From assembly GCA_900088475.1 (NCBI GenBank), contig FLMG01000658.1, positions 1 through 64,000 of the forward strand: a stretch of DNA of 64,000 nucleotides, given 5' to 3'. Source of the stretch: Hyphochytrium catenoides. Its lineage: Eukaryota > Protista > Hyphochytriomycota. This document shows, in pieces, positions 7,974 through 49,300 of the stretch (the stretch's first letter is position 1; every line of letters starts with the position of its first letter). The notes under the pieces are model-generated. The model was not told where the DNA came from, ran no database searches, and worked only from the letters and a program-made list of their open reading frames with translations. The translations under genes were made by a program, and so were the position numbers.

Positions 7974-9679
7974 CTAGCGATGGCCATCGTGCTGGTTTGC
8001 CTTCAATGTGTTAGTGACGACGCCCAGGTGGATAATCCTGTCCCCAGCCTGCACGACAGGATTCACGTTCTTTCCAATGACAATTCCGTCTTCTGGAGCA
8101 AAGTAGTCCCTAACATGATCGCCTAGTAGAGAGAATGGTGAACATAAGGTAGTGACACATCATAGGCTGGGAAAATCCCTTACCGAAGACATCATGGACT
8201 GTTGCTATCTTGTCGCCCTTCCTCACCCACGTGTTGACCTCTGCAGTGTAGAGGTGGTAGAAATGAGACGGGAATGGCTTTAGTAACAGAGACATATACT
8301 TGGCGTGCTAACGGTCATAGGAGCAAGCACTGACCTGGATGGACGACCATCAGCCCTCCAACATCTGCATAACTCCACGAAGACCGCCCACAGACCACTG
8401 GGTCCACATCTGGCGGCTCATTGGAGGCTTCGACAGAGAGCATGTTCAGATACACCATAATGTTATACACGCCGACGAGAGCGTGCCTGATGTACCGCCG
8501 CTGAAAGACTAGCGGGTTGCCAATCTCCACAGTGATGGCGGGGATTTGCAGCTTGGCGGCCGCCCCTCTGAGGGAGCCGTCCGGACTGGAGTTATGTACG
8601 ACAATCTGCGGGTTCTGTAGAAGCGCCATCCGTCTGGCCATTGGCTCCAGAAGATTTGCCCGCACATAAAGAGAGTTTACTCTTCCGTGGCTCGCAGTGT
8701 GAAGGTCAATGAGAAAGTCTAGCTTCTTGATAATCTTGTGCATGAACTGGTAGCAGTATTGATTCCCGCTATCGCCGTCTGGCTTGCCAGGGAACAATCT
8801 GTTGAGATCCTGACCGTCACTGAAGGTTCTGGTGCACCGCATAAAGCCCGGGTTATTCACCACGGGCACGAAGACCACGATGCCGTGCAGAGAGTCGACA
8901 TCCAGCTCCTTAACTAATCTGTGGATCAGCGGGATGCCATTGAGCTCATTGCCATGCACCGCTGCTGTTATGCCTAATATTGGCCCTGAGAGCATCCCTC
9001 GTGCTATGATCAGCGGGATCTTCAGGGTACGAGAGAACGCATCCATGGTAAGCGAGAGCCATAACCGGTGGATGCGGCCGGGAAGGAGATCAGAAAACTC
9101 CACAGTGTCCAACAGCACGCGCTTGTCTGTCTCCTCATAATGGCTGAAGTCTGAGGGCCTTCGAACCATTGGCCTCTTTTTCTCAAGCATTGAGCCCAAC
9201 ACGTTTAGCACATTCATGCCCTCCGTCGTATCTTGAAAGCGAGCGTTGTCAACCTTGGATGCCCAAGCCAGCACGTTAACATTCACACCTGCGCCTCCAG
9301 CCTCTCCCAGCCACCGTTGCCACTTCTTCAGGATCTTACCAAAGGCAACTTTATTGACAGTGGCATAGTCAAAGAGCCGCATAATCCTCTCACGGAAGTT
9401 CAGCAGCGTCAGTCTGTCATGCTTCTTCTCTTCAGCGAGCTTGTGGCCCTCGTCCACTAACTTCTTGATCTCTACCGTGTAAAAGTCATCAACCCTTCTT
9501 ACGTCTTCCTCAATAATGGCTTCAAACTTCAGAACCGTATCGCTAATAGTCTCAGGAGGCGGATGCTCCTCGGCAGAAGTTCCAGCTTGCCGGATTAAGT
9601 TCTTGAGCTCTTCATACCGCACGTACTGATCCTTCCATTCAGGCACCATGCGCACAAGCATCTGCTTGGAAAACTTCAT
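7974..9679 (-). CDS. SPX domain fused to succinylglutamate desuccinylase/aspartoacylase-family (AstE/AspA, M14 Zn) hydrolase; 3 exons (9679-8335, 8240-8184, 8122-7974), 516 aa
   Basis: SPX N-terminus MKFSKQM..VPEWKDQYVRYEELK and NKVAFGKILKK; hydrolase motifs AAVHGNELNG, DLNRLFPG, LIDLHTAS, ITVEIG. GT-AG splicing restores the family C-terminus VHPEVNTWVRKGDKIATVHDVFGDHVRDYFAPEDGIVIGKNVNPVVQAGDRIIHLG. Confidence 0.93.
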
Positions 9680-44474: not shown

Positions 44475-44955
44475 TCTGAAGGAAGAAGGAAATAGAACGG
44501 TCTGTACGCTATGCTATTGTCCCTTGGCAACAGCCCAGCGTCCTCTACTCTGAAGACAGACGAGACGGACGGGATCTGCAGCTCTTCGTCTCCTTCCCGC
44601 GGTGACATTCCCCTTGGCGCTGGGTCTGTGCATCAACTCTCCTTCCTTTCAGGTTCTTATCCGCCATTCCTCCCCGTTCTCCCCTTGGCCAGCCACCCCG
44701 TTAGCGGCTACTATTAGCTGGTTCTGATGGGTGTGAAAGGTCAGGAAGCTCAGATCCACGGCTCGTGATCCATCGCGGTCATTCGTCCGTCCTCTTGGGC
44801 AACAGCCGCAGCTTTATGGAAGAGAATGTCCTGGACCTCAAGAGGATGGACAGAGAAGACTCGGTCCAGTGAAGACATTGTTGAAGCACTAACACGGCAG
44901 AGGGTTCATTGGCACTTTATGCTGGCACAAGCTAAGTAACTAATCGGAATCTTTG

Positions 44956-47281
44956 TTAGAGGCGAGATTGACTCTGGTGTGAGGCTGTGGATGGCTGCGA
45001 AAGCAAGACTATCCCTTTATGGGAACCTAAAGATGCTCCGCGATGTATCGAGTGCTCTAAGAGTGTCTGTCCATCATGAGATGCCATCGATGTTATAACA
45101 AATGAAGCATCGGCTCCTGGTGCCAGGGCCAGTGGGTCGTGACCTAGCTGTCGATAAACGATCTTGGCACGCTGCAACTCCTTGTCCTTTGAGAGCTCTT
45201 GTGCCGGTAGAGGCACTGACTTTACTCCTACGATCCCCGCATCAGCGCAATGAGGTAAAGACACAGTGGACGGACAGAGAAGGTCAAAGTAAGTCAGTTA
45301 AGACCCGTGCAAAGGAACTTCCTTCGCGCCTTACCCTCCGATACTGCCAGTTCGCGAACGACATCGTCCTGAGAAGTGGTCGCAGAGCCAATAACTATCG
45401 AAGTTAGTCTGCCGGATTTTAGAGCTCGAATGGCCCGGCGAAGAGTCTCCGTCTCCTGCTGTCCAGCTGAAGAGATTTCAGCCATCGAGAGCTAACATGA
45501 AGTGATGAGCACAGCTAACCTGTCAAATTGTGAATGAACAGTGTTGAAGAAGGTGGCAGAAGAGGTTCAAAGGCCCATTTTGCGTTGGAGCAGGTTACAA
45601 AGCCTATCGTATGTCAAACAGTGGTCTATGTTAGTGAGAATGAGGGCATCACCCTTGAGGCAGGCCTACCGGCAACGCCAATGTCCAGAAGCCGATCTAC
45701 TTCAACCTGGGACAACGGAAGCGGAACGAGGATGGAGACGTCCGCTTTCAAATCTGCTCTCTTAAAAGAGTACGGCAGGTGCGGTGGGTCAATCGTCAAC
45801 TTCTAGAAACAATGTTTCAAAGAGAGTTTGAGGGTATGACTACCTCTGCCTCTCTAACGAAGCGCTTGACTTGATCTATGGTCCAGCCTTCTGTGTGACA
45901 TTCAATTATAAGATTAAGCTTGTTTACACCGAGCTCAAAGGTGGTCCTAGTCTCTTTCTCAAGCTGCGCGGCCTTGATGTCGAACCCTTCAATCGTTTTC
46001 CACATTGACCGAGCAGGTGTGACGCTAAGACCGTCCAGGTGCTGGACAGGCCTGCGGAATCATCAGCATTAGCATCAAAGCATGGGGGTTTGGCGTTCCT
46101 AAGCAAGCGCATGGTAAGAAATGATATGTAGGTGGCAAGAGTAAGATCGGGATGGTATGCATTGGGATTGGGAAGAATAAGTGAGTAATGTAGGTGGGCA
46201 TCTGACTACTTAGGAGCGAACAAGGAATACCAGGCAATGCCTTGAGCCTCGGGTAGGATATCCAAAACCTTGGATCCGCTTACTATCAGCGTCAGTTCCT
46301 CCGGAAGAGCTCCATGACAACGAACTACTGCCTTTGAGTGCAGCGCGTAAGTCAAGAGCTTCTGTAACCTGATGGAAGTGATCTTGGATTGCTCAGCCGC
46401 TGCTATCACTATCTGCAGACAGTGTGGAACTTGTTTAGTATGGGGAAGGGGATGCAGCGTTTGGCCATGCAATGTACCTCATCCGCGGGATGGTTTGGCA
46501 GACGACTCTTCAGCAGACTGAGCATTTCAGCCGCCGACTTGCCTGTGGCACACACCAGGAAGACATAGCCAAACTTCCTCATATATCTGGGAGATGAAAG
46601 GGTGACGCTAAACATGCGGCTACCTCTGAGGAACGTGTTTGACCTTTAGCTACCTGTCATTATAGATGGCAAGCTCCTTAAGTTCAACCTGACACGGGTT
46701 AAGAGTCAGTGGCGACACATTATGGTTCCATAGCACAAAGGCCATGCACCTCAGTCGCTGCTTGCGCTCCGGCTTGCTCCTGCGATGCCCATGCTTTCGT
46801 TGCGCCAAATTTCTGCACGTATACAAAGTCTATGCTATCAGTAGGTTTCTCTATCCAATTTATAAACCTTACCATCTCCTAGCTCACCTCGCGTATGGAC
46901 TTTTCTCCTATCATTGGATGACCAGCAAACGCCTCCAGCCAATCTGTTTAGGACAAGTAACAGCTTGAGCCCTTCTCACGGCGCAATATGACAGGCTTGA
47001 ATTACCTTCCCGTGAGAGGCTCCACCACACCTCTTTAGCGACCTCATCGATGGTACCGATACTAAATGGTCGACGGGCGGCTACCTGCTTCACCCACTGT
47101 TGACTGTGACAGCACCTGATCAAGGAGACAGTTTTTAGAGGAGGCAGGATGAGGGTCCTCTGCTATGATGGGAACCTCACATCAAAACCTACCTGTCAAG
47201 CTCCCGATAGAGCTCTTCTTCGCTTATACAGTTTAGGGCCTGTATAGAAGGTGGCTCCCAGTTCCACCCCCTTCTACTCAT
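44956..47281 (-). CDS. OHCU decarboxylase fused to a degenerate allantoinase-like amidohydrolase domain with a C-terminal PTS1 (SRL); ~12 exons
   Basis: UraD motifs LNCISEEEL..RCCHSQQWVKQVAARRPF, DWLEAFAGHPMIG, WASQEQAG, YMRKFGYVFLVCATGKSAAEML..RL, AAAEQSKITSIRLQKL. Then allantoinase-like segments LHSKAVV..LTLIVSGSKV, LLDIGVAG|FVT, ETETLRRAIRAL, LAPGADASFVI; ends QSRL*. Confidence 0.85.
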
Positions 47282-47771: not shown

Positions 47772-49300
47772 TAGAGCTGGTGCGTTGGGAAGCCCGGGTA
47801 GTTCAATTACCCGAGTAAAAGCTTGTGACTAGGATATTTGGAATCGACTCCATGAGTTTGAATCGTAGAATGCCTGCTGGAGAGGGAATAAGAGACACTC
47901 TTCCACAACCTATTCCGTTGCGATGGAAAATCATATTGATTAGAGGGATAACGTGCCTAAAGTATCGCCGTGAGCTGATTCTACTTCCTACTTCCTCTGT
48001 ACTTTCGAATGTAGCAGCGGTCACAGTGTCTCAAGGCTCACGGCAGTCTCATCATCATCTATCAGACGCCGTCGACAGGACCAGCTCGGCCTCATTATCA
48101 TCGGACAACGGAGATGTGAGGCGTTGCACAGCACCACGGCAGCAGACAGGGGTGCCTGGAGATAGCAGGGCTCAAAGGAAGGAGTGGAAGGGAAAAGAAG
48201 TGCACACCACTTTTACTCGCTATAAGAACTTCTCTTCGTGGTCTCAGACGCTCCCTCAGCTTAGAGATATATCAAGCATCAGAAGAAAGGCATCCTGCGG
48301 CGACCGAAAGAGCACATATCTCATCCACTTCTTACCCATCTGTCTACTGCTGACGTCTGACAACCGCCACGGTGGATGAACTGAGGATATACCCCTAAAC
48401 GACTGTATCTTCTGAGTGGGCGCCGCGAGGTCGCGACTTTCTTCTAATGGGGCCTGCTTCCCGTCAGAGAAGGTTCAAGGGGCAGCTAACGTTCTAGGCG
48501 TGTCCCGCGATGACCCAGATTTAAAAGCCTGGCGTTTACTTATCAAGGCTGTTGCGAACCCACCAAAGGAGGAAAGAATAATGTCGTATACAGAGTTCGG
48601 TCCCGATGTACCACTTGGGACACTGCCTGGCGCCGCAAAGCCCGGGGTTGCCGTGGACTTCAAGCCCGCTGAAAGCAGAGTGCAGCAGTCAGAGTCTGGG
48701 CGTAAGTTGTCATCGGAGAGTGCTCATTAGAATACGATTCTGACCTTCCCTTGACTTGTTCCATTGTCCCAGCTGGAGAAGCGTTCTATCAATGGCTCAG
48801 TCGCATATTGAAGAAGTGCAAGAAGTAAGTTAACAGCAGATCTGCTTTTTGACCATGGCAGTCTTCAGCTCGCCGCTCACAATAGATGTACCCAGGGCCG
48901 ACATCTATGCCATCTTCTTTGATCCAGTACTTGAAGAGGATGTCCCCCAATATCGAAACATTATCAAGGTGAGGCTCAACCTTTCCCTTCTTAAGCACCG
49001 TGTCGTCAAAGACATGTCCCCTTGACTGACGGCACGCTTTCTGTGTTAAGAATCCCATGGATTTCTCCCTAGTGGCACTCAAGATTGATCACAAAGTTTA
49101 TCAGAACTTGGGGCAGTTTGCGGTAAGCGTGTAGCCATGAGTGTTGACTAGGTTGCGTCAGCCCTAAGAGCCGTTCTCTTTGCAGGATGACTTGTACCTT
49201 ATTGCGGCAAACGCCATGTATTTCAACCAGAAAGAGACAGAGTATCATAAGCAGGCACTGGTTCAAAGGTAACGTCCCGCTTGGCGGATTAGTCTCTTAT
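47772..49300 (-). mobile_element. Decayed hAT (DUF659-type) element with a possible terminus
   Basis: Minus-strand remnants GLTQPSQHSWLHAYRKLPQVLIN, HVFDDTVLKKGKVE..ILFKYWIKEDGIDVGPGY, HSPMTTYAQTL, SFRGISSVHPPWRLS; TAGAGCTGG at 47772 fits the hAT YARNG terminus; clustered CCCGGG motifs nearby. Confidence 0.45.

Follow-up and report, generated by a model that had tools for sequence, protein, structure and literature searches.

Here, we describe a gene on the minus strand of a 64,000-nucleotide (nt) stretch of Hyphochytrium catenoides DNA (GenBank assembly GCA_900088475.1, contig FLMG01000658.1, positions 1 to 64,000; the whole stretch is called ‘the window’ below), in which a complete UraD, or OHCU decarboxylase (OHCU being 2-oxo-4-hydroxy-4-carboxy-5-ureidoimidazoline), continues in frame into a long C-terminal tail. 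The reading that we prefer, at a probability of roughly 0.58, is that this one gene (47281-44956) encodes one peroxisomal protein, which would consist of an intact UraD and a pseudoenzyme domain derived from allantoinase, the latter bearing a type 1 peroxisomal targeting signal (PTS1).

The exon model was rebuilt base by base from three-frame translations. It comprises 12 exons within 44956-47281, with a coding sequence of 1473 nt (490 codons plus the stop, hence 490 amino acids) that ends in SRL and TAA. All 11 introns are bounded by GT..AG, their lengths being 77, 62, 75, 61, 67, 65, 179, 41, 66, 53, and 107 nt from first to last. This reproduces exactly a 12-exon model from a preliminary description of the locus, down to the introns of 41 nt (45843-45803) and 53 nt (following FIHNLT), and we infer that the mRNA is spliced as modelled.

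An intact UraD joined to a tail within one exon

The N-terminal ~172 residues of the product are UraD: residues 15-174 of the spliced protein match residues 5-166 of a 166-residue Pseudoalteromonas UraD with an E-value of 1.7e-39, and because the two align from end to end, introns 1-6 are validated. Exon 1 (47193-47281), with the start codon and the UraD N-terminus, and exon 5 (46654-46688) follow from the exon model and the alignment with bacterial UraD; exon 2 (47006-47115) aligns in the same way and, taken alone, matches positions 15-50 of the Pfam family PF09349 at E 0.093. The core of the domain is encoded by exon 6 (46478-46586; FGYVFLVCATGKS), which matches PF09349 by itself (E 1.1e-8; 36.2 bits, the cut-off being 24) and whose tblastn matches are annotated uraD genes, situated in urate-catabolism clusters on bacterial replicons, including plasmids.

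The histidine of HPMIG (exon 3, 46888-46943) and the glutamate of SQEQAG (exon 4, 46750-46812), which the preliminary description had singled out as kept, are indeed there: in a three-way alignment with two bacterial UraDs, no variation is seen in the HP.IG, EQ.G, and IRL columns, and the domain closes with the IRL..LL motif. The His of HP.IG, the Glu of EQ.G, and the Arg of IRL have catalytic roles in the zebrafish and Klebsiella structures. The assignment of the N-terminal part as an intact OHCU decarboxylase, predicted to make (S)-allantoin, is solid.

Bacterial UraD ends exactly at the motif that here reads RLQKLL, and exon 7 (46231-46412) runs on in frame, with 48 further codons before any stop. 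This exon thus holds the last UraD helix, the fusion junction, and the first ~40 allantoinase-like residues. As both sides of the junction lie within one exon, the fusion does not depend on any splicing choice; it is written in the DNA.

Collinear similarity of the tail to allantoinase

The tail, defined as the C-terminal 318 amino acids, was compared with AllB allantoinases, all of them bacterial, using a profile of 451 columns and a hidden Markov model (HMM) built from 101 sequences. Since standard methods penalise large deletions heavily, the tail was rescored against the AllB profile with cheap gap extension. It then reached 41.9 bits, compared with 26.4 ± 4.5 bits for shuffled versions, only three of 2000 of which scored as well, while the reversed tail gave a Z-score of -0.8. 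In the same test, 21 unrelated Escherichia coli proteins ranged from Z -1.4 to +1.3, and the only controls to stand out were two members of the superfamily, the dihydroorotase PyrC (6.65) and the TatD-type hydrolase YcfH (3.59). Five other amidohydrolases and 26 unrelated proteins scored at noise level.

The traceback runs through profile columns 25-445 in order, with 240 columns aligned and 81 identical to the consensus. The native order of the six exon-encoded segments is the ninth best of the 720 possible orders, and for each segment the collinear placement is among the three best. The alignment begins in exon 7 and proceeds, in exon 8 (45844-46051), through PARSMW..EGF, corresponding to EPGR.HWEGY, and TTFELGVNKL, corresponding to TTFIEMPLNQL; in exon 9 (45670-45802), through KLTID and LLDIGVAG, the latter being the strand expected to carry the carbamylated lysine; in exon 10 (45520-45603), through FVTC and LFIHNLT; in exon 11 (45335-45466), through ETETLRRAIRALK, corresponding to TEVEAIRRAIYFAK, and RLTSIVIGS, corresponding to RLHVCHVSS; and in exon 12 (44956-45227), through LGHDP, LAPGADASFVI (the amidohydrolase G.DAD motif), and HRG, which are followed by a low-complexity stretch, SRL, and TAA. 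The AllB alignment is unbroken across the exon 8/9 junction, from which it follows that intron 8 is not former coding sequence. In exon 12, 90 open codons cover ~160 AllB profile columns.

This signal is modest, with a P-value near 1e-3 rather than 1e-30. Single exons searched against Pfam and NCBIfam returned UraD only, with no allantoinase family (PF01979, PF07969, or NCBIfam) up to E 10, and a sequence search of the Protein Data Bank (PDB) with exons 8, 11, and 12 gave only noise. The 101-sequence AllB HMM matched neither the spliced protein (hmmsearch, all filters off) nor the six frames, where its weak matches are not collinear, and a local hhalign score of 19 was equalled by 13 of 120 shuffles. 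An ungapped scan for 15 AllB motif blocks singled out only the block with the HxH motif, treated below; several other top matches were clearly due to chance. Among ESM Atlas features, exon 12 led to amidohydrolase fragments at 0.88, which we regard as a lead only, exon 11 to irrelevant small proteins, and exon 8 to nothing. Folding in isolation a stop-free stretch of 113 residues that includes exon 12 gave a predicted local distance difference test (pLDDT) score of 36.5, which is meaningless. The similarity is weak but real, follows the order of AllB, and is shown by no other amidohydrolase tested, so that an earlier claim of collinearity with allantoinase is borne out, if by a weak signal. 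It is very likely, judging from this similarity, that the tail descends from an AllB-type allantoinase.

Loss of the metal ligands

In the numbering of E. coli AllB, the binuclear centre is formed by His59, His61, the carbamylated Lys146, His186, His242, and Asp315. His59 and His61 are absent from the spliced product; Lys146 corresponds to Val (GVAGFVT, exons 9 and 10) or to a gap; His242 is Val (RLTSIVIGS versus RLHVCHVSS); and Asp315 is Gly (LGHDP versus SDHSP). Only His186 may survive (LFIHNLT versus VLVHCEN). Hence, the spliced product lacks five of the six ligands, along with ~130 residues (318 amino acids versus 451 profile columns), and the tail is therefore not a canonical binuclear-metal allantoinase. 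It appears unable to hydrolyse allantoin in the canonical way and would be a pseudoenzyme domain.

These results refine the preliminary account of what was lost. That the carbamylated lysine has become Val agrees with the alignment, in which the position may instead have been deleted; that the SDH segment is absent holds for Asp315, replaced by Gly, but a vestige of the segment remains as LGHDP; and the HxH motif, said to be deleted, is gone from the spliced product but probably not from the DNA, where a probable relic lies in intron 7.

A probable relic of the HxH segment in intron 7

When exon 7 is read past its modelled donor (46182-46229, minus strand), it continues as YSLFAPK, a TAG stop codon (46208-46206), and SDAHLHYS (46205-46182), so that a probable HxH relic, DAHLH (46202-46188), stands in the frame of exon 7, behind the TAG and inside modelled intron 7. 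Its position is the third best of 127,906 in the window for the 16-column HxH profile block, it has exactly the spacing P-x3-D-A-H-x-H, and the profile score climbs from 41.9 bits to 56.2 when it is placed before TPARSMW with an X for the stop. We consider it somewhat more probable than otherwise, from these matches, that the segment is a true relic. If so, the motif was probably lost through a stop codon or a shift of splice site and not by clean deletion. Both candidate donors, GTATTC at 46230 and GTAGTC at 46209, lie at or before the TAG, the latter being an in-frame alternative that would append YSLFAPK to exon 7. No GT donor is found downstream of the relic, and no present transcript can therefore carry it in frame.

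Some caution is in order, as the other top-ten matches from the 15-block scan that fall in the locus are non-collinear and plainly due to chance. One frame of intron 10 (45467-45519), for example, reads VSCAHHFMLALDG, the ninth-best match in the window to the AllB block TCETCTHYFYFD; being both out of order and out of frame, it is taken as chance and shows how easily false ‘relics’ arise.

The frame that begins after the TAG with SDAHLH (45927-46205, minus strand) has no stop for 93 codons, overlapping exon 8 in a different frame. It was ruled out as a true coding path by its codon score of -0.083 bits per codon.

Codon usage and introns of the tail

Codon usage was scored as log-odds trained on seven long open reading frames (ORFs) of the window. 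Exons 8-12 score a gene-like 0.047 bits per codon, compared with 0.049 for the UraD exons and 0.063 for true genes, whereas pooled spurious stop-free ORFs average -0.075 ± 0.032 and reach at most 0.049 over 5000 draws. By exon, the scores are +0.065 for exon 8, +0.109 for exon 9, -0.066 for exon 10, the weakest, and +0.076 for exon 11. The locus contains five decoy open frames of at least 40 codons, and because the competing frames score negatively (-0.056 to -0.083), the modelled frames are the coding or formerly coding ones.

Eight introns of the window are validated by homology, six in UraD and two in a gene for an SPX-deacylase, and they measure 61-94 nt. The introns of the tail resemble these eight in their AG-free tails and pyrimidine content. 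In exon 9, an alternative in-frame acceptor 42 nt downstream would remove KLTIDPPHLPYSFK and lengthen intron 8 to 83 nt.

A targeting signal at the end of a probable dead domain

The C-terminal tripeptide SRL (44967-44959), which is followed directly by TAA (44958-44956) at the end of exon 12, fits the [SAC][KRH][LM] type and is a canonical PTS1; this part of the preliminary description stands. We infer that the protein would be imported into peroxisomes. Among the roles suggested there for the second half (scaffold, oligomerisation, or targeting module, perhaps with an active allantoinase docked to it), that of a targeting module fits the anatomy best. With the signal at the far end of the dead domain, Pex5-mediated import of the UraD activity would depend on translation right through the tail. 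A UraD-only product stopping at the TAG would carry no PTS1, and animal UraD is a peroxisomal protein with a PTS1 (PMC8919083); on these grounds, we propose that the signal keeps the tail open.

The PTS1 may thus be the main reason why the domain has persisted. Selection would preserve an open frame and a soluble tail, and with them the attachment of the signal, and the domain would otherwise be free to shrink by in-frame losses. The HxH segment, in turn, would have been lost through a stop codon, one that splicing from an upstream donor now bypasses.

One may go further and imagine an ancestral bifunctional UraD-allantoinase with a single PTS1 at its allantoinase end, in which the allantoinase later eroded and the dead domain came to be ‘held hostage’ by the targeting signal, although we hold this history only tentatively and rather doubt it. 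Under it, allantoinase activity would have become dispensable, any truncation or frameshift would have stranded UraD outside the peroxisome, and only in-frame losses would have been tolerated, the most recent being that the HxH segment of the exon, once struck by a nonsense mutation, became intronic, as can still be seen in the DNA. The locus would then be a snapshot of domain death under a constraint on the frame only. If the tail is translated, the gene would offer a natural test of how a domain decays when only an open frame and a C-terminal signal are needed, and would also illustrate how moving the splice donor can rescue a stop codon. Annotators should avoid naming the protein an allantoinase, and use of allantoin by the organism must rest on another gene, if one exists.

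Alternative explanations

Several observations weigh against a translated pseudoenzyme domain, and most of them favour the main rival, a decaying pseudogene tail, which we consider improbable, if by no means negligible. The living gene would then be UraD plus a short tail ending at the TAG (46208-46206) or at some other, unmodelled end, and exons 8-12 would be the remains of an allantoinase that was once fused or adjacent, with an open frame threaded through them by manual splicing. The strongest single argument for it is the in-frame TAG directly before the probable HxH relic, which resembles a pseudogene lesion. In addition, the catalytic residues are gone; two introns of the tail (41 and 53 nt) are shorter and two (107 and 179 nt) longer than the validated range of 61-94 nt; at three of the five junctions in the tail, a segment of AllB is missing; and lesions may, in principle, hide inside invented introns. 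Open frames are, moreover, easily threaded: dynamic programming for a stop-free path as long as the tail, with at most five GT-AG introns of 40-180 nt, succeeded in 17 of 60 random natural windows and also in some shuffled sequences. An open frame after manual splicing is thus no evidence in itself, and although the frame that was previously described as open over about six exons to SRL is reproduced, its openness does not exceed chance. Finally, we found no orthologue, and exon 12, compared with 1.84 billion representative proteins, matched only two spurious repeat proteins. Yet a wreck of such divergence should have collected stops and frameshifts in its long exons, and exon 12 is open; the codon usage of the tail is as good as that of live genes and clearly better than that of the competing open frames; the tail introns have normal 3' features; and a canonical PTS1 stands at the end of the frame, where it would not be expected to persist in a wreck, while the UraD-only product would have to do without one.

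It is quite unlikely that the tail has no relation to allantoinase and is a domain specific to this lineage, with motif matches due to chance, given how rarely shuffled sequences attain its profile score, and given that the reversed sequence and the 21 natural control proteins stay within noise. The six exon segments match in collinear order and to AllB specifically, and the context lends this match a high prior, since allantoinase uses the product of UraD. We see an even slimmer chance that the tail retains some non-canonical activity or ligand binding, be it as a mononuclear or metal-independent hydrolase or as an allantoin or ureide module that regulates or channels the output of UraD. The maintained frame and codon usage, the possible His186, and the kept G.DAD-like motif would suit such a role; however, Gly stands here in place of Asp315, a residue found throughout the superfamily, His59, His61, Lys146, and His242 are absent, and ~30% of the barrel is missing.

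Relatives and comparison with known systems

The two matches to exon 12 (44959-45225) are bacterial tandem-repeat proteins, hit 14 times and four times over query residues 23-68, which marks them as a compositional artefact and not as homologues. Metagenome scans with exon 12 and exon 8 were blank. Such blanks say little about orthologues, since the conserved SPX-deacylase encoded in this window has only 43% identity to its closest match in the protein collection, from which the window's own proteins are absent. The SPX-deacylase gene (8318-9679, minus strand) has its best named matches in early-diverging fungi (Basidiobolus, Neoconidiobolus, chytrids, and Coemansia), and tblastn confirms its three exons, with introns of 94 and 61 nt; the source organism is without a close relative in the collection.

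No description of a UraD-allantoinase fusion, live or dead, was found in the literature searched. Documented fusions join 5-hydroxyisourate (HIU) hydrolase to OHCU decarboxylase (allantoin synthase; PDB 5Z5M) in plants, diatoms, and bacteria (PMC13751858, PMC13691922), and in bacteria UraD is also joined to other ureide enzymes. The diatom partner of UraD is accordingly HIU hydrolase (PMC13751858, PMC13691922) and not the uricase given in the preliminary description. In both allantoin synthase and the protein described here, the fusion partner of UraD comes from a neighbouring step of the urate pathway, and one peroxisomal signal serves the whole chain. They differ in that the partner in allantoin synthase is the upstream enzyme, whereas here it derives from the downstream enzyme, allantoinase, and is catalytically dead, and in that the signal is a C-terminal PTS1 here and an internal type 2 signal (PTS2) in plant allantoin synthase. 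Fusion of UraD to the upstream enzyme is a textbook pathway fusion.

With E. coli AllB (PDB 3E74), a cyclic amidohydrolase (PF01979), the tail shares collinear similarity from about column 25 to column 445 and the blocks EPGR.HWEG, TTFIEMPLN, KLT.D, GV.GF, E.E.IRRAI..AK, and the G.DAD motif. AllB has ~450 residues rather than 318; in the tail, five of the six ligands are missing and there is no profile-level match. A bacterial fusion of allantoicase and OHCU decarboxylase (NCBIfam PRK13797) likewise joins UraD to a later enzyme of the ureide pathway, and this 521-position model meets the UraD end of exon 7 at positions 500-520, but its partner belongs to another family, both halves are presumed active, and it is bacterial.

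Closest in kind are inactive domains of the amidohydrolase fold with non-catalytic roles, such as the spacer of yeast Ura2, which resembles dihydroorotase, and the CRMP proteins, which resemble dihydropyrimidinase. These are like the tail, as interpreted here, in being cyclic-amidohydrolase domains that have lost their metal ligands and are still translated within a working protein. They keep a full-length barrel, in contrast to the tail, which has lost about one-third and the likely role of which is to carry a targeting signal.

Surroundings of the gene

Other arrangements of the locus were considered and rejected. A separate downstream gene for the tail is ruled out by the lack of a stop between UraD and the tail inside exon 7. 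The tail is also not the 5' part of the neighbouring gene, because the TAA at 44958-44956 precedes the ATG of that gene (44608), and a plus-strand gene beneath the locus is excluded by codon scores that are about zero or negative.

Upstream, a divergent plus-strand open frame of 184 codons (47825-48379), without a Pfam family, begins ~540 nt from the ATG of the UraD-fusion gene. Downstream, only 348 nt separate the TAA of the fusion gene from the ATG of the next minus-strand gene, and the 3' untranslated region and the promoter of that next gene must fit into this common space (44608-44956).

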